From Schizochytrium sp. TIO01 (Eukaryota; Protista; Bigyra: Labyrinthulomycetes), in contig SMSO01000006.1 in assembly GCA_004764695.1 (NCBI GenBank), positions 1,565,859 to 1,629,858 of the forward strand: a DNA stretch of 64,000 nucleotides, in the 5' to 3' direction. Below, one piece after another: positions 57,029 to 64,000 of this stretch. Under the pieces are notes generated by a model. The model had not been told where the DNA came from, ran no database searches, and was given only the letters and a program-made list of their open reading frames with translations. The position numbers and the translations under genes were made by a program. Every line of letters begins with the position of its first letter. Position 1 is the first letter of the stretch.

Positions 57029-59487
57029 TCTCGTTTTCTTGAAAGTTCTTTGGAAGAGAACAATGTTATTATCGATGTAATTCGTGGATGAGTGAGTTCC
57101 GGGTTCTTAAAAGCGATCTGCGCTCTTCTCCGGCGATCTCAGACGCTTAGGTCGTAGACGGATATTGGGATCCTCGTCGCGCGAGGACCCGTCTTTACGT
57201 CGATAAAGCGGAGACCTGTGCGAGGAAAACGAGCTTTGGCAGCGGCTTTGGCGGCTTAGAGGGAAGCGGCAGCGACGTACTTCTTTTTCTCTATCATATC
57301 ATGTGAAAAAAATCAATTCTTCTTCATATCTATCATAATGACTTTGCATCGATTGAGGATAAAAGTTGTGCACTAAACTTGAACAAGCGAAAGTAAAGCA
57401 ACAAAGTCTCTTTTTGTGCGATTTATTCGAAGGTTTCTCTCGCTCCTTCGATGACGTGGCATTTAGAAGTCAAGGAAACGCTAGTATTGTGTCGGAATGG
57501 GGAAAGAAGAGGCGTAAGGATGGAAAGAGAGGCCAAAGGGCGATGAGGAACTTGGATGACGCAATGCGATGATTTTACAGAAGAATTGTTTTTCGACAAG
57601 ATGAAAGAAAAAAGAGAAGTAATTGGTTGCCTCTAAAACTAGATCAGAAGTAAAGGTGAGGGAGAGGGAGGCCGCAGAGGGGATGTGAGCAGCTGTGGGA
57701 GATTGGGGGAACAAATGGCTAAGAAAAGAGGGATAGCACGACTCAATAAGACTGCGACTGAAGCTGCCGTTACAAAGCAGTGGAAAAGTGTTGTAACTTA
57801 GTTTTATGAGGGTATTGAATGAAGCTATGTGTGACATTACCACTGCGACCAAAATAACTCAGTCGAGGCAGGAGAAGATAAATATTCACAAAAGTCACAT
57901 TCTCAAACAGGTTGGTGTCATGGATGTGCGTACTATGGTATTACGCACCAAAAGAAACTTTCACATTTTGATGAAAAGCATTCATTTTGATGCCAAACCG
58001 TGCTCAGACTTATTACACCAGGTCCTTGAAAATTACTAGTTTGTTAAACGTTGGGGATCAGGAGAGCTTATCAAGCGGTATTTTTTAATCTGGCTTGAAA
58101 GAAAGTGTCCTTCCACATGTATTACATTTATAATGCAGGGGTTGAATGAAGTCTAAGGCGGTGGCCTGCTGTCAATCTAAATCTTTAGCTGATTTGAAGG
58201 GTGTAGGAGCAAAACATTTCGTGGTTATCACAGCAACATCTATTCACTTACCTTGATGAAAAGTCGTTGACAATTTGTAGTCAAAAAACGCGCAGTGAAA
58301 AATTACACGCAAGACATGCATAAAGGCGCTGTAACGCGTTGTGACATGTTCTCTTGGTTATTTATTGGTACTCATGACGAGGAAATGCTGACTCTAAGAA
58401 CTTACACGCCTAAGACACCCGTGAAAATATGCAACACCTAGAGAAATGATTTCTTTGCGTCTGAAAAGGAAAAGTGGAGACGCTCCAGGTTATCCGAGGA
58501 CAAATGCTCGACTTAGACTCTTAAACGGAGGGATGAAAGGTCGGCTTCAGCCCATGGCAGTTCATGCCGAGGAGTTGCCATCTCTAAGGACCTCTAAGCC
58601 TACAATAACTGTAGAAAACATTCAACATCAAGAGAAATATTTTCGTTGTCTTTGAAGGAAATAAGGAAACGTAGAGCTCTCCATATTCCCTGAGGAAGAG
58701 AAGTTTACTCTTTAACAGAAGGTGAAAGGTTGGTTTCGGGGTGTCTTCGTAAATACATAATCAAGGAGGAAACTTTCACGTGTGTAGCAACAAAACAAAA
58801 ACCCAGTCAGGAGTACGTGAGTAGCAGTTCCGGGAACAGAGTTATTAAGTGAAGAAGAAACAGCATTTGGTTGGAAGGCGATGAACTCAGCGCCAAGGAC
58901 GCTGATCTGTTTGAGCAAAGCCTTACTCTAAAGGAAACGTAAGAACTTAATTCAGGAAGTGCTATTCAATGATTACCTATTTATGAGGTAGATTATATCT
59001 TTTTTAAAAGATTAAGCATTAGCTTATGTCAATGGTGCAATGCGGTTCTTATAATTAGGGTTACTCAAAGATAAGAATTTTATTGCAACAGATTAGACAA
59101 CAGGTTACCAAGATTACATTGGAAACTATGTGCAGGCAGTGACTACACCAGCGCACAAAGCTCATTCGCTATTCATAGGCTTTGTATAGCTCGACCTGTT
59201 CTGTAGTATCCCTCGGCCTTGCAAGTAACTTGCAGCAAAGGACAAGAAGAAGATATCTTTGTTTAAATGTCAAATATGGCCCATGGCAAACCAAGAAATT
59301 GTTGTGGTTTTATTGTTCAATTTCTTCAATATCCATTAATTTGACTACATGTATACTTGGTTTGAGAAATAAAAACCTTATTAAAATTCCCCATATTGGC
59401 TGTTTTTGTGAGTTCTCTTATCTCAGGAATATTCATGTATTCATTCATGTCTTCATGTAAATATAGTTATTCCAAAGTACTTTTGAA

Positions 59488-62400
59488 TTATTCTAAAATA
59501 AAGTCAGGACCAACAAGATCCGCTGTTAGCAGAGGTCCAAGCTGCTCTTTTAGAACACTTGAAAGGTCGTGAATATTTACACTCCAGTACTCACGAAGAC
59601 GATCTGCACGCAACAGGCGCCACGCTTTGCGGACCTGCTCAAATGAATCTGGGAAAAACGGATCATTACCTAATTTTCTTGAGCAGGTTCTTACATGGGT
59701 ATGACAAGCATCGCTATCCGGTGAGCTATACTCAAGACACCAAGCGCAAAAGTAGTGACCACATTTATCACTGCCACACTCCACTGCGCAACAGCCATCA
59801 AATTGATCGAAACAAGTATTGCAATGTGGGCAAGATGCATTCAGAATCTTTTCTTGGATATGCTTCAAGTGTCGCTCTGTGTCACGAGTCAGCCCGTCAG
59901 TCTGTAAGAATGTTTCCATATGCCTCCGGATCTCCTGCTCAGCCCATATTGCAGCTTCGTTTTCCGCCTTCATTCGCGCAATAAGCATAAGGTGATTTAG
60001 AGCATTTGGCGCCAAACGAGTGATCTCTTGACCCGAGATTCTTTTATCACACCCAGGCTTCATGCAAGCCATCGTTCCATCACTGTCCACGGATACACAC
60101 GCTTGAGGTTTTGCTGCGGCTTCTACCGAATGCGCGACACAATCCTTGCAAAGGAAGTCTCCATCCTCACAACTTGTTCCTTCGAATAGGGCGTTTTCCT
60201 CCATACACACAATGCACACTTCCACAGAAACCTTTGCAAATCCAAATGCCTCGTGCTGAAGTGCTTCCTGAGCACTCAAACGCGTATCAGGGTCTGTTGC
60301 TTTGAGAGAATCAATTAAGGTCTTCATCGTAATCGTTGGATCAGGATATAGATCCTCTAACACTACTCCCACTGAGTACATATCCATGGATGTTTTAAAT
60401 GCATTTACGTGCCCGCTTCGCAACTCAGGAGCAACATACCGAGGCGTTGCCTGAAGGGAGGTGTAAGTTGCGGTGCAGTCTGCGACTTTAATGCCATCGA
60501 AATCTCCAAGCAAAGGAGTTCCATTGCTTGTAAGAAAGATATTTTCCGGTTTGATGTCACAGTGGACAATTGAGTGAACATGCAAATCTGCAACGCCAAC
60601 GAGTAGACCCATGGCAAGGCGATCACGAACCATTTTGCCTTCACGAGGGTGCTCCGAAATCCACTGTGCTAGATCCCCTTGCTCATAGAAAGGCATCATG
60701 ATGCAGCCTCGTGGCATTCCATGAGACGTGTCCACGAAAGCACCGATGATATGGATCACATGCTGAGACACAATCTTACCCAGGTTTGCAACTTGCTTAT
60801 AGAAAGATGAGGATTGATTTGAGTTTGCAAGTTGAAATTGTTTCAAAACCAAGGTTTCACCAACGTTGTCAAATACCTTTTGCACCGTCTTTCCTCCTCT
60901 TGAGGCGAGAGGAGCCCCGTTGAAACGAAAATCTGAGACTGCAACATTGGCCAACCATAGATCTGAACGTGCCACCTCAAAAAGTCCTTCTGTATTGACA
61001 TGCAGTCTTTCTAGCCAAGTCTTATCTTTCAATAGCTCTGGATAATGATCTTCCGCATGTTGCAATGTCTCAGCAAGCTTATGTCGAAATCTTTTACTCA
61101 GATCAAAAGGAGTACCTTCTGAAAGAATTCGCTCTTGTTTTGCTATCCTCCGCCCAAAAAATTCTGTCGCTCCTTCTGAATCCTCCGCTTCGAGATTATC
61201 TCTGGCCTTTTTTAAGCTTTTCAGGCTTTCCATCGCTTTTCTCGAAGCAACAAGCTTTTCATACATTTTCTCTAAATGTAACAGATCTGGCATCTTGGTG
61301 CCTAAGAGGACGTGATTATACGTCTTGTTGAAGTTCTCCAGTGAAAGCCTGGCTGATATGCTGGAGTCAGAGCCTTCCACTGAAGTTTCCCGCCAGATGG
61401 TGCAATGTTGAATTAATATCAATGAGCATTTCGACAGCCTCTTCGTACAAGTTATCCTCGCTGAGGACGTTGAGTTCTTCTTGAAGAGCATTTCGAAGTT
61501 CTGACATCTCATGTGCTAGCTCAGCGAGCTTTTCGGGTTCTGTGACCGCAAGATAGAAAGTATCACCAAGCCCCAGCTTCGATGCTCGCAATACCACACT
61601 TTCTGCAGCTTTCTTGCTCAGTTCTCTAGTAGCATTGAATTGATTTCCATACTTCATCTTACACGATTCAACGCATTTGCCAGCGCGCTCCACCAGTCCT
61701 TGATAGTGTTTAAGCCCAACTTCATTTGCTTGATGAGCGGCTTTCGCATCATTTCGATTCAAATCATCCAAAAATAATGCAAGTCGTTTTTGGAAATCAC
61801 ATGCAGCAACCTCATCACGTTCGCAGCAATCTACACGAAGCCAAGGGTACACCTCCTGCAAGAGTGAGCGCAAGCCATCCCTGGCAGCATTACGCTCTTC
61901 AATGAGACCTTGCAATGCAGTTTGATGACTCTCTCTGATTTGCTTCTGAGAGGAATCTAAGCGTTCCTTTAAATTTTCAATGGAGTCAAAAGTCTGCCAA
62001 AGCTTCATTTGAGCAAAGTGACTTTGAATTGACGGCGCTATGAATTCCTTAAGCAAGGTAATGCCTTCTTCTTTATCTCTAGCAAGGCTAGTACGCTTGT
62101 TGGAGACCCCCTTAGCCAGTTGCATCACATCGGAAAAGCTTCCCGTGGCAATTTCCAGCAGTTCCCTGAATGAATGATAACACGAAGTATGAGTATTGAG
62201 CGAGTTAGGGCCCTATTGCACGAATGAATTTAAACCCATCGACTAACAAAGGATAATTGGACTAACGCACGCATATCCTACACTATCAACTTACTCCGAT
62301 TCAACCAAAGAAGTCTTTGCCGAGGTATATGGGGCCGTGTCTATAGAATCACTATTCTCTTCAGAAGAGCACACTTCGGTGAACAATTCTTCAGGGGTGA

Positions 62401-64000
62401 GTGTTCCATAGTCGTATCTACATTATATCACTCAAACAACCAGAAAAAAACTGTTAGAGTATTGATCCACGTTACTCCCAATAGAACGAAGAAAAACTGA
62501 AACGTGTTCCCGAGGCTAAGAACAACAGTATAATTAAACAAAACTTACTCGATTTGAACTGACGGGCATGCTTTGTACAGCACCTTCGCAAGGGCCTCCC
62601 AGCCCTCATCGTCAATGGGGTTACAAGCAAGACTGTGTAGTTGCCATTTGATACGTTTTCAGGACAATGTCAGTTGTGTTGTGTCAATCTAAATTCTCAA
62701 TTCTCAGCTGCACGATATCTCTCAGCATGTTGCCTGGCCTACATCTTCAGCATTTGCTCATCACTTTCACGTTTGCATTCTCCAGTGAGTATCCCCATAC
62801 GTTTCGATTGTGAGTCATTGCACTTGCCATGCGCTGTTGCAGTGCTTCATATCGTTGTTCTCAATGCAGTAAGCAGTGTATTCTCATCAATGTAACGTAC
62901 TCCAATGTTGTCAGGTTCTTGCAATGCTCCAGACCTTTGGCCAGTGCCTGACAACCTTCCCCGCTAATGTTGTTACGAGAAAGACTGTGTAGTTGCTTGC
63001 CATTGGATACGTTTTCAGCACAATGTCAGTTGTGTTGTGTCAATCTAAATTCTCAATTCTCAGCTGCACGATATCTCTCAGCATGTTGCCTGGCCTACAT
63101 CTTCAGCATTTGCTCATCACTTTGACGTTTGCATTCTCCAGTGAGTATCCCCATACGTTTCGATTGTGAGTCATTGCACTTGCCATGCGCTGTTGCAGTG
63201 CTTCATATCGTTGTTCTCAATGCAGTAAGCAGTGTATTCTCATCGCTGAAACGTACTGCAATATTGTCAGGTTCTTGCAATGCTCCAGACCTTTGGCAAG
63301 GGCCTTCCAGCCTTCATCGTCAATGCTGTTAGAAGAAAGACTGTGTAGTTGCCATTTGATACGTTTTCAGCATAATGTCAGTTGCGTTGTGTCAATCTAA
63401 ATTATCAATTCTTGACTGAACGATTTCACCTCAGCATGTTGCCGGGCCTGCATCTTCAGGATTTGCTCAACCCTTTGACTTTTGCATTTTCTAGTGACTA
63501 TGCCGATACTTTTGGATTGCGAGTCATTGGGCTTCCCAGGCGCTGTTGCTGTCCTTCATACCGTTGTTGTCTACATAATGAACAGTGTACTCTCCTCGAT
63601 GAAACGTACTCCAATATTGTCAGGTTCTTACAATGCTCTAGACCTTTGGCAAGAGCCTTCCAGCCTCCATCGTCGATGCAGACAATGCAAAGCCTATGTA
63701 GTTGCCATTTGATACGTTTTCAGCACAATGTCAGTTGCGTTGAGTCAACATAAATTCTCAATTCTCAGCTGCATGATATCACCTCAGCATGTTGCCTGGC
63801 CTGCATCTTCAGCATTTGCTCATCACTTTGACGTTTGCATTCTGTAGTGACTATGCCGATACTTTTCGATTGCGAGTCATTGCACTTGCCATGCGCTGTT
63901 GCAATGCTTCATATCGTTGTTCTCCATGTAGTAAGCAGTGTATTCTCATCAATGAAACGTACTCCAGCGTTGTCAGGTTCTGGCAATGCTCCAGACCTTT
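59488..64000 (-). CDS. 5'-partial multi-exon LRR - helical - protein kinase - RING1/RING2(Rcat) protein; exons >64000-63963, 63693-63610, 63340-63257, 62984-62901, 62632-62549, 62417-62295, 62165-59488 (frame break ~61349-61448)
   Basis: All six introns are GT(ACGT/AAGT)..AG and phase 2. Splicing reads ...KGLEHCQNLTTL-E-LCIVCIDDGGWKALAKGLEHCKNLTIL-D-LSSNSIDDEGWKALAKGLEHCKNLTIL-H-LSRNNISGEGCQALAKGLEHCKNLTTL-D-LACNPIDDEGWEALAKVLYKACPSVQI-E-YDYG...LVES-E-ELLEIATGSFSDVMQLAKG, in frame with ORF 61367-62128. ORF 59488-61512 then has kinase motifs (LVLK, HCDIKPEN at 60541-60564, DFD, YVAPE, DMYSVG), RING1 (CIVC..C..LCKDC..CMKPGC) and RING2 (CPHC..FDGCCAVEC..CGHYFCAWC..H..C). Confidence 0.85.
62549..64000 (-). 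repeat. Tandem array of ~353-nt intron+LRR-exon cassettes (4 full periods, continues beyond window)
   Basis: Exon 5' ends at 63693, 63340, 62984 and 62632 (spacings 353, 356, 352). Each unit is an 84-nt exon plus a 268-272-nt intron. Introns: 63694-63962, 63341-63609, 62985-63256, 62633-62900. Confidence 0.95.

Follow-up and report, generated by a model that had tools for sequence, protein, structure and literature searches.

A gene family joining cassette-encoded leucine-rich repeats to a kinase and an RBR-like ubiquitin ligase module in Schizochytrium sp. TIO01: putative soluble receptors

We analyzed a stretch of 64,000 nucleotides from Schizochytrium sp. TIO01 (hereafter the window), which a search of the strain's own assembly placed at C5:1565859-1629858. 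Its right end, from 59488 to 64000 and on past the window, carries on the minus strand a gene whose product joins an array of leucine-rich repeats (LRRs), each encoded by a small exon of its own, to a helical region, a protein kinase and a RING1-helix-Rcat module that resembles the RING-between-RING (RBR) ubiquitin ligases. The gene is a member of a family that counts at least 70 paralogs and in which the length of the LRR array varies. We hold this architecture and the existence of the family with great confidence. Taken as a whole, the data are probably best explained by a soluble LRR-kinase-RBR-like receptor of the immune or non-self type; regarding the biological role by itself, we infer only tentatively that these proteins are receptors acting in immunity or non-self recognition.

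A 353-nt period, detected with TRF at 62588-64000 and thus up to the window end, extends ~6 kb farther, to contig position ~1,636,000, in ~21 copies of 80-87% identity. In the 64-Mb genome this array is confined to one locus, and a genome search found no DNA relative of its cassette elsewhere. Read on the minus strand, the repeat resolves into 22 consecutive phase-2 exons of exactly 84 nt, all open and in the same phase (five within the window), in cassette units of 353-357 nt; AG precedes each exon, and GTACGT follows it (GTATGT once, GTAAGT once). Every exon encodes one 28-aa LRR of the ribonuclease-inhibitor (RI) type, with the consensus L-S-x-N-x-I-x-x-E-G-[CW]-[QK]-A-L-A-K-[GS]-L-E-H-C-[QK]-N-L-T-T-L plus a split junction codon. 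The unit thus has the 28-29-aa length and the LxxLxLxxNxI stretch followed by an amphipathic helix that define this type, and single exons match Pfam LRR_6, the ribonuclease-inhibitor model (E, 0.002-0.03). Open reading frames (ORFs) on the plus strand of the repeat were rejected as coding sequence: the joints read CT..AC on the plus strand, that is, GT..AG on the minus strand. When an extra G at 61389 of the reference is left out, the gene model comprises 27 exons and 1,633 codons without a stop, and the domains follow in the order short N terminus, ~25 LRRs, 123-nt linker exon, ~400-aa helical region, kinase and RING1-helix-Rcat. No segment of transmembrane (TM) quality was found in the joined protein (19-residue Kyte-Doolittle means peak at 1.44, within the kinase), and the modelled protein has no signal-like N terminus.

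An earlier note on this DNA, made from the sequence of the window alone, had read the 353-nt repeat as modules of an intron and an 84-nt exon with one 28-aa LRR each, spliced in frame through the 123-nt linker into the helical region, kinase, RING1 and Rcat, with no TM segment. The open exons, their canonical borders and the LRR_6 matches bear out the modules; the contig joints given below confirm the splicing, and the hydropathy profile agrees as to the TM segment. Extension of the contig past 64000, which the note had proposed, brought the count to 22 LRR exons of 84 nt and added two degenerate ones and a predicted exon 1. Positions with the prefix L003 lie in this continuation. The parts of the gene are as follows:

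59488..62165, minus strand: last exon, 2,678 nt including the stop, encoding the helical region, kinase and RBR-like module; spanned unbroken by contigs X4 record 16 and X1 record 2
62166/62165, minus strand: acceptor of the last exon, ttcag|G
61389, minus strand: single-base insertion in the reference, GGG versus GG in the sequencing runs; it splits the ORF, and the frame arithmetic fits
62166-62294, minus strand: intron, 129 nt
62295-62417, minus strand: linker exon, 123 nt, phase 2, with AG and GTAAGT borders
62418-62548, minus strand: intron, 131 nt
62549..62632, minus strand: last LRR exon, divergent, capping the array (LRR_6 E, 0.03)
62901..62984, minus strand: LRR exon, 84 nt (LRR_6 E, 0.002); X8 record 26 and X4 record 20 stop exactly at its borders and continue into the neighbor exons
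63257..63340, minus strand: LRR exon, 84 nt (LRR_6 E, 0.006)
63610..63693, minus strand: LRR exon, 84 nt, read from borders and frame
63963..64000, minus strand: 3' portion of the following LRR exon, which extends to 64046
Beyond the window, minus strand: 17 further LRR exons of 84 nt
L003:1231-1335 (105 nt) and L003:1576-1656 (81 nt), minus strand: two degenerate LRR exons upstream of the array
L003:1785-1852, minus strand: predicted exon 1, 68 nt, 6.9 kb beyond the window end, proposed from its ATG, GTAAGT donor and matching phase 2

To follow the joints in transcripts, we used assembled contigs of sequencing runs, 16 of which contained at least half of the words sampled from the stretch. 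Runs with assemblies of 35-49 Mb were taken, as a guess, to be RNA-like, and those of 63-64 Mb, about the size of the genome, to be DNA-like. Over 59400-62995, contigs of three RNA-like runs from three studies (X1, X4 and X8) were compared with those of one DNA-like run (X15). Contigs of X4 and X8 skip 62165-62293 and 62415-62548 (joints 62164/62294 and 62414/62549), with GT..AG ends on the minus strand, and the X1 contig drops the 131-nt intron. The X15 contigs read through both introns, and neither joint is present in them. A single molecule, X4 record 16 (3,034 nt), holds the last LRR exon, the linker, the entire final exon and 3' flank corresponding to the 3' untranslated region. Within the array, X8 record 26 consists of exon 62901-62984 bordered directly by 14 and 16 letters of the adjacent exons, and X4 has the same loose ends. 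Given these junction contigs and the read-through in the DNA-like run, splicing of the cassettes follows the predicted joints and connects them to the kinase exon. An independent transcript shows the whole plan: in a complete ORF from MMETSP (P0188), a single chain bears LRR_6 (5e-34), Pkinase and the module, with LRRs identical to those encoded in the exons of a distant paralog at C13:1.15 Mb. The taxon id given in the MMETSP record, 87120, is that of a fungus and was disregarded. We also observed that the X1 contig keeps the 129-nt intron 62166-62294, a possible case of intron retention.

The final exon encodes the helical region and the kinase, placed as follows:

60943..62164, minus strand: helical region, ~400 aa, between the LRRs and the kinase
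60217..60942, minus strand: protein kinase domain (Pfam Pkinase E, 5e-28)
Kinase motifs, minus strand: beta-3 Lys, 60841-60843; HCD, 60541-60564; DFDG, 60493-60504; Gln in place of the alpha-C Glu, 60793-60795

The helical region has no Pfam family and no Atlas neighbor; in an AlphaFold2 (AF2) model of P0001, a protein 97% identical to the studied one, it is all-helical with long helices. The kinase retains the beta-3 Lys, catalytic Asp and DFG Asp of active kinases and is of the non-RD type, with H-C-D invariant in 21 aligned family members. Kinases in the PDB match it at an E of 1e-14 or weaker, with no close subfamily, and it is not PINK1-like.

The C-terminal 255 residues returned no significant Pfam match: RBR models remained below significance, and the only trace was IBR_2 on the Rcat (E, 4.3). 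Alignments and an AF2 model divide this part as follows:

60049..60216, minus strand: RING1 of RBR type (CxxC ... C-x6-C-x2-C ... C-x4-C)
59833..60048, minus strand: Cys-free helical linker of 72 aa at the place of the IBR/BRcat (AF2 helices 85-119 and 124-137, pLDDT >80)
59683..59832, minus strand: Rcat-like zinc domain (CPxC-x9-GC-x4-C-x4-C-x4-C-x2-C ... H-x-H-x3-C)
59791-59793, minus strand: candidate catalytic Cys of the Rcat, the third Cys, invariant in 59 relatives
59488..59682, minus strand: C-terminal helical tail conserved with the module in alignments (AF2 helices 205-248)

Three routes place this module with the RBR ligases. By profile, an alignment of 37 relatives matched the RING1 of RNF216 (3e-7), parkin (2.5e-6) and ARIH1 (4e-4) in the PDB, as well as the Ariadne Rcat 1wd2 (1e-3) and the parkin Rcat subdomain. 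By predicted fold, an AlphaFold model built from 59 sequences (pLDDT, 91.8) had RBR ligases only as its best Foldseek matches, with RNF216 (6e-6) followed by HHARI, parkin, ARIH2, HOIL-1 and HOIP; the RING1 fold matched 1wim at a TMt of 0.65, and the parkin Rcat-ubiquitin complex 9c5e was matched with a probability of 0.92. By Atlas feature search, the nearest named clusters carry IBR, RBR and Rcat_RNF216. Of the parts of an RBR ligase, the module has the RING1 and an Rcat with a conserved Cys between zinc-ligand pairs. It is widespread, with 1,701 representatives at E ≤ 1e-3 in a library of 1.84 billion proteins. It likewise forms the C-terminal end of other proteins (P0050, P0073, P0085, P0045 and P0007), namely UPF1-like or DEAD helicases bearing CCCH fingers, such as in Pythium oligandrum, and ankyrin-kinase proteins of Hondaea. 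Because other protists fuse it to helicases, ankyrin repeats and CCCH fingers, the module appears from these sequences to be a general output domain lacking from Pfam. One of its Atlas neighbor clusters comes from Nucleocytoviricota.

We next considered how the LRR cassettes vary. Among 21 aligned units of the studied gene, nucleotide diversity (pi) was 0.160 in the exon versus 0.066 in the intron, and no 84-column window of the intron exceeded 0.080. At the face codons (2-5 and 7-9), nonsynonymous divergence (dN) was 0.51 and synonymous divergence (dS) 0.38, giving a dN/dS of 1.33; for the other, scaffold codons, dN/dS was 0.27. In 109 exons from 13 paralogs of the main clade, entropy was confined to positions 2, 3, 5, 8, 25 and 26 and the junction codon, which are the x sites of L-x-x-L-x-L-x-x-N-x-I and the beginning of the loop that comes after it, and 20 of 27 positions were nearly invariant. 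In LRR structures, these positions of variable residues line the concave, ligand-binding sheet. Four paralog arrays gave a pi of 0.38-0.49 at the variable codons versus 0.018-0.045 in the introns; across the arrays examined, diversity at the variable codons was ~2 to 25 times that of the flanking introns. A search of the LRR introns against Rfam yielded a chance-level match only, and the intron folded worse than its shuffles (z = +1.79), which rejects intronic small RNAs as the cause of intron conservation. In the absence of an RNA family or excess structure, the near-uniformity of the introns is best read as concerted evolution. Since the exons are symmetric (phase 2) and the introns nearly identical, unequal exchange would be safe for the frame, which fits the variable number of units, and we infer that arrays grow and shrink by unequal exchange of exon-plus-intron cassettes. 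Together, these data show germline cassette duplication and codon-specific diversification.

The studied gene is one of many. A genome search with the kinase-ligase piece returned 318 candidates; 70 of them were scored, and 72 matches resulted, giving at least 70 paralogs. Most share 64-68% identity with the studied gene, most have open frames of ~925 aa, and ~55 of the 72 lack an internal stop. When the 10 kb upstream of 20 paralogs were scanned with a hidden Markov model built from the studied gene's LRR exons, one-LRR-per-exon arrays with a period of 400-457 nt were found in 17. Within the fetched stretches, the arrays held 4, 5, 5, 6, 7, 7, 9, 9, 10, 10, 11 and up to >21 LRR units (for example, TRF gave a period of 422 and 6.1 copies for the array in L027). 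Two distant paralogs, at ~40% identity, have 84-nt LRR exons and shorter introns. Homologs in Hondaea fermentalgiana carry ankyrin repeats at the place of the LRRs and keep the kinase and ligase module. In a FastTree phylogeny, the studied gene and its 97% identical twin P0001 occupy a long branch of their own beside a very shallow, short-branched main clade and two smaller lineages. The studied copy, which unites an 84-nt LRR exon array, helical region, HCD kinase and RING1-helix-Rcat in one gene, is thus a divergent single-copy lineage of the family. The earlier note had named two outcomes that would overturn its reading, and neither is the case: the 84-nt segments are spliced and joined to the kinase exon, and the gene is no conserved single-copy housekeeping gene but belongs to a set of 70 or more paralogs whose LRR exons number 4 to >21, as the genome search it had suggested revealed. 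Its author had not recognized the architecture as that of a described family; in line with this, our literature search found no paper describing such a family or architecture.

The nearest described system is that of the brown-algal LRR-ROCO proteins, which together with NB-ARC-TPR proteins are candidate immune receptors diversified by exon shuffling, with 72-bp phase-2 exons encoding 23-aa LRRs (Zambounis 2012; Teng 2024, PMC11378527). Both systems belong to stramenopiles and place one LRR in each small symmetric phase-2 exon of a tandem array; both have variable or positively selected sites on the concave face, cytosolic proteins and expanded families. They differ in unit and in output: the brown-algal LRRs (72 bp, 23 aa) precede a ROC-COR GTPase, whereas the exons studied here (84 bp, 28 aa, RI type) precede a kinase and an RBR-like module. 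Alternative splicing has been reported for the brown-algal LRR-ROCO genes. No searched piece of the studied gene had a Pfam match to ROC or COR, which separates it from the ROCO/LRRK class, or to NACHT or NB-ARC, which separates it from the NLR/STAND class.

Toward its C terminus, the protein is most like the RBR ligases, RNF216/TRIAD3 being closest, followed by parkin and ARIH1. It shares with them the CPxxxC-type last ligand pair of RING1, the Cys spacing and invariant third Cys of the Rcat and a helix after the Rcat, and it differs from them in having no IBR/BRcat and a kinase fused in cis. The activity of parkin depends on phosphorylation by its partner kinase PINK1. The pairing of a kinase with an RBR ligase is thus common to both systems; here, however, the two sit on one chain behind an LRR sensor, the kinase is not PINK1-like, and activation by phosphorylation is proposed by analogy. 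Like TRIM5alpha and TRIM21, the protein joins a hypervariable recognition domain directly to an E3 in an expanded, fast-evolving family; unlike the TRIM factors, it is without B-box, coiled-coil and SPRY. Like plant LRR receptor kinases of the XA21/FLS2 type, it combines a variable recognition domain with a non-RD kinase; unlike these, it has no signal peptide or TM segment, and its LRRs are RI-like and not of the plant 24-aa type.

From these likenesses a working mechanism can be sketched. The LRR horseshoe would bind a variable protein ligand in the cytosol or nucleus, and binding would release or assemble the helical region, activating the kinase. The kinase could then switch on the adjacent RBR-like ligase, in analogy to the action of PINK1 on parkin and to the phosphorylation of RNF216. 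The ligase would take ubiquitin from an E2 onto the invariant Rcat Cys and ubiquitinate the bound ligand or a signalling partner. An alternative that we consider unlikely, though stronger than the others weighed here, accepts the gene as real and assigns the family to a kind of recognition other than defence, such as cell-to-cell recognition of self and non-self (in fusion, mating or kin discrimination) or the regulated turnover of variable endogenous proteins, with the LRRs recruiting substrates to an E3 that the kinase gates. The expansion of the family, its variable binding face and its clustering would be the same under it, and such patterns also mark allorecognition genes in fungi and animals; in addition, the module is a general output domain, fused elsewhere to helicases, ankyrin repeats and CCCH fingers. 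Arguing for pathogens instead, the best-known examples of non-RD kinases and of hypervariable LRR faces are receptors for pathogens. Moreover, mirusvirus-like elements are reported in the host in a telomere-to-telomere preprint on Aurantiochytrium limacinum (10.1101/2023.06.15.545109).

Several points weigh against a functional receptor of the immune or non-self type. The alpha-C Glu of the kinase is replaced by Gln in all family members seen, and the loop corresponding to GxGxxG reads ASRGGKTV; given the Gln and the poor Gly loop, the kinase may be weak or a pseudokinase-like switch. In the ligase module, the place of the IBR/BRcat, one of the parts that define RBR ligases, is taken by 72 residues without Cys, predicted to form a helical hairpin, and the fourth RING1 ligand is Asp in the studied copy versus His in most relatives. 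Variation at the face codons could in part consist of old repeat types reshuffled by conversion and not of ongoing positive selection. The reference copy carries the frameshift at 61389. The RNA nature of the runs is a guess, and contigs cannot reveal transcript ends, strand or rare isoforms; the read comparison spans 59400-62995, and exons 1-3 and most LRR-LRR junctions are predicted. Finally, what we propose of ligand, kinase and ligase activity and response to infection is deduced from sequence.

The genomic setting of the paralogs could be taken to mean that the family is a passenger of subtelomeric rDNA-spacer duplication, with its copy and cassette numbers set by concerted evolution of chromosome ends, its variation at a few codons due to relaxed constraint, and little or no protein function. 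In 8 of 13 paralog upstream regions, the first LRR exon is preceded at a distance of ~1.5 kb by a 5S rRNA gene of the same orientation:

5S rRNA genes: L018:4537-4655, L019:5045-5163, L021:4906-5024, L024:2704-2822, L025:4031-4149, L026:2085-2203, L027:5519-5637 and L029:6718-6836

In addition, many paralogs lie within 100 kb of contig ends, the branches of the main clade are very short, and the introns are nearly identical. We nonetheless regard this explanation as very unlikely. The scaffold codons are strongly constrained (dN/dS, 0.27; entropy near 0 at 20 of 27 positions), and relaxed constraint would not limit change to six exposed beta-strand positions. Roughly 55 of the 72 matches have no internal stop, and transcripts exist. 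The studied copy, which is not beside rDNA (L003), persists as a lineage of its own, and old paralogs and the Hondaea homologs keep the kinase and ligase module.

The same setting links the family to a published repeat class. The A. limacinum preprint describes LORE-TEARS group 5 as units of 408-481 bp (median, 430) in 1.8-20.4 copies, typically beside 5S rRNA genes, and presents the subtelomeric LORE-TEARS as spacers without GenBank similarity that possibly serve chromosome-end maintenance; LRRs, kinases and ubiquitin are not mentioned in it (10.1101/2023.06.15.545109). Our paralog arrays, with 400-457-nt units in 4 to >21 copies ~1.5 kb downstream of a 5S gene, resemble group 5 in size, copy number and position, and only in these, since no group 5 sequences are available from the preprint. 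The array of the studied gene (353-357 nt, no 5S gene nearby) is not of this group. Because the paralog arrays fit in unit length, copy number and position, we think that at least LORE-TEARS group 5 consists of LRR exon-plus-intron cassettes of a protein-coding family and not of noncoding spacers. As a separate observation, contigs C30, C31 and C13 measure 7.5-9.8 Mb versus the 1-4-Mb chromosomes reported for A. limacinum, and internal family clusters with 5S genes (e.g., C34:2.83-3.0 Mb) may mark joined chromosome ends; alternatively, a difference of strain may be involved.

For the studied copy itself, a real frameshift at 61389 would make it a pseudogene in the sequenced strain, producing only a truncated LRR-helical protein. 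The reference reads GGG at this site, and the two large ORFs, 61367-62128 and 59488-61512, overlap out of frame because of the single extra G. However, the base is missing in four of four runs (X1, X4, X8 and the DNA-like X15), the site is a homopolymer, and no other stop interrupts the 1,633 codons; furthermore, long-read assemblies of A. limacinum are reported to have lower base accuracy (supplement, 10.1101/2023.06.15.545109). We therefore place the pseudogene explanation lower still, and the extra G is taken to be a homopolymer assembly error or a private allele. The earlier note's reading of one chain accordingly holds for the runs, in which the two ORFs form one last exon of 891 codons, but needs correction for the reference as deposited. 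A short bridging intron between the two ORFs was rejected: a GT..AG stretch of 20 nt falls outside the length class expected, and what the reads reveal is a difference of 1 nt. Reference and runs differ by ~1% overall, and the variable 5' part of the last LRR exon (62611-62632) is swapped outright, the runs encoding L-S-S-N-Q-I... and the reference L-A-C-N-P-I....

Least probable of all is that a targeted mutational process, and not selection on ordinary mutations, made the variable codons: in a single array the face codons are 10 to 25 times as diverse as the introns next to them, above the usual range of positive selection, but no mutator element, template repeat or base bias was seen (none was searched for), short conversion tracts that homogenize introns together with selection against homogenization of the face explain the same pattern, and strains differ by ordinary substitutions elsewhere.

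If the reading of these proteins as soluble LRR-kinase-RBR-like receptors is true, this heterotrophic stramenopile possesses an extensive repertoire for recognition whose design has not been seen in other organisms, in which a variable LRR sensor, a kinase and a thioester-type ubiquitin ligase are combined and diversified by cassette exons. Such a repertoire would be an independent addition to the LRR-based receptor systems (NLR, RLK, VLR and brown-algal ROCO). The natural fusion of a kinase with an RBR-like ligase would be useful for studying how phosphorylation gates RBR ligases, and an IBR-less RBR lineage of >1,700 representative sequences missed by Pfam would be defined. Published "noncoding" repeats from Aurantiochytrium subtelomeres would likewise have to be reread as genic sequence made up of exons and introns. 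Because the organism is culturable and transformable and harbors latent virus-like elements, the receptor idea is testable in the organism itself.

Predicted exon 1 begins M-A-R-T-K-Q-T-A-R-R-S-T-G, the first 12 residues of histone H3 with Arg for Lys at residue 9. The nine-residue H3-like start occurs seven times in the genome; the other six occurrences have canonical H3 codons, and the studied gene has different ones. A reversed control pattern gave zero genome matches, and no H3-like start was found in the 20 paralog upstream regions. A recent DNA copy of an H3 gene was rejected as the source of exon 1, since there is no DNA paralog and the codons differ from those of the six canonical starts. 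Given its rarity, its differing codons and the lack of a paralog, we conclude that the predicted N terminus is a genuine H3-tail look-alike that did not arise from a recent gene fragment; it may act as a mimic of the histone tail or as bait. A bolder proposal, which we rate as a long shot, is that the family is the main innate immune repertoire of thraustochytrids and that the studied member carries the H3 tail as an integrated decoy, baiting H3-modifying or H3-clipping enzymes of pathogens (e.g., those of mirusvirus-like or giant-virus-like elements residing in the host); once the bait is modified, or a ligand is captured by the LRRs, the kinase and ligase would fire.

The upstream neighbors of the gene look like ordinary genes: L003:3315-4826 (plus strand) and L003:5299-9939 (minus strand) are long intron-free ORFs whose translations, as judged by eye, are like asparaginyl-tRNA synthetase (AsnRS) and an XRN1-type 5'-3' exonuclease, respectively.

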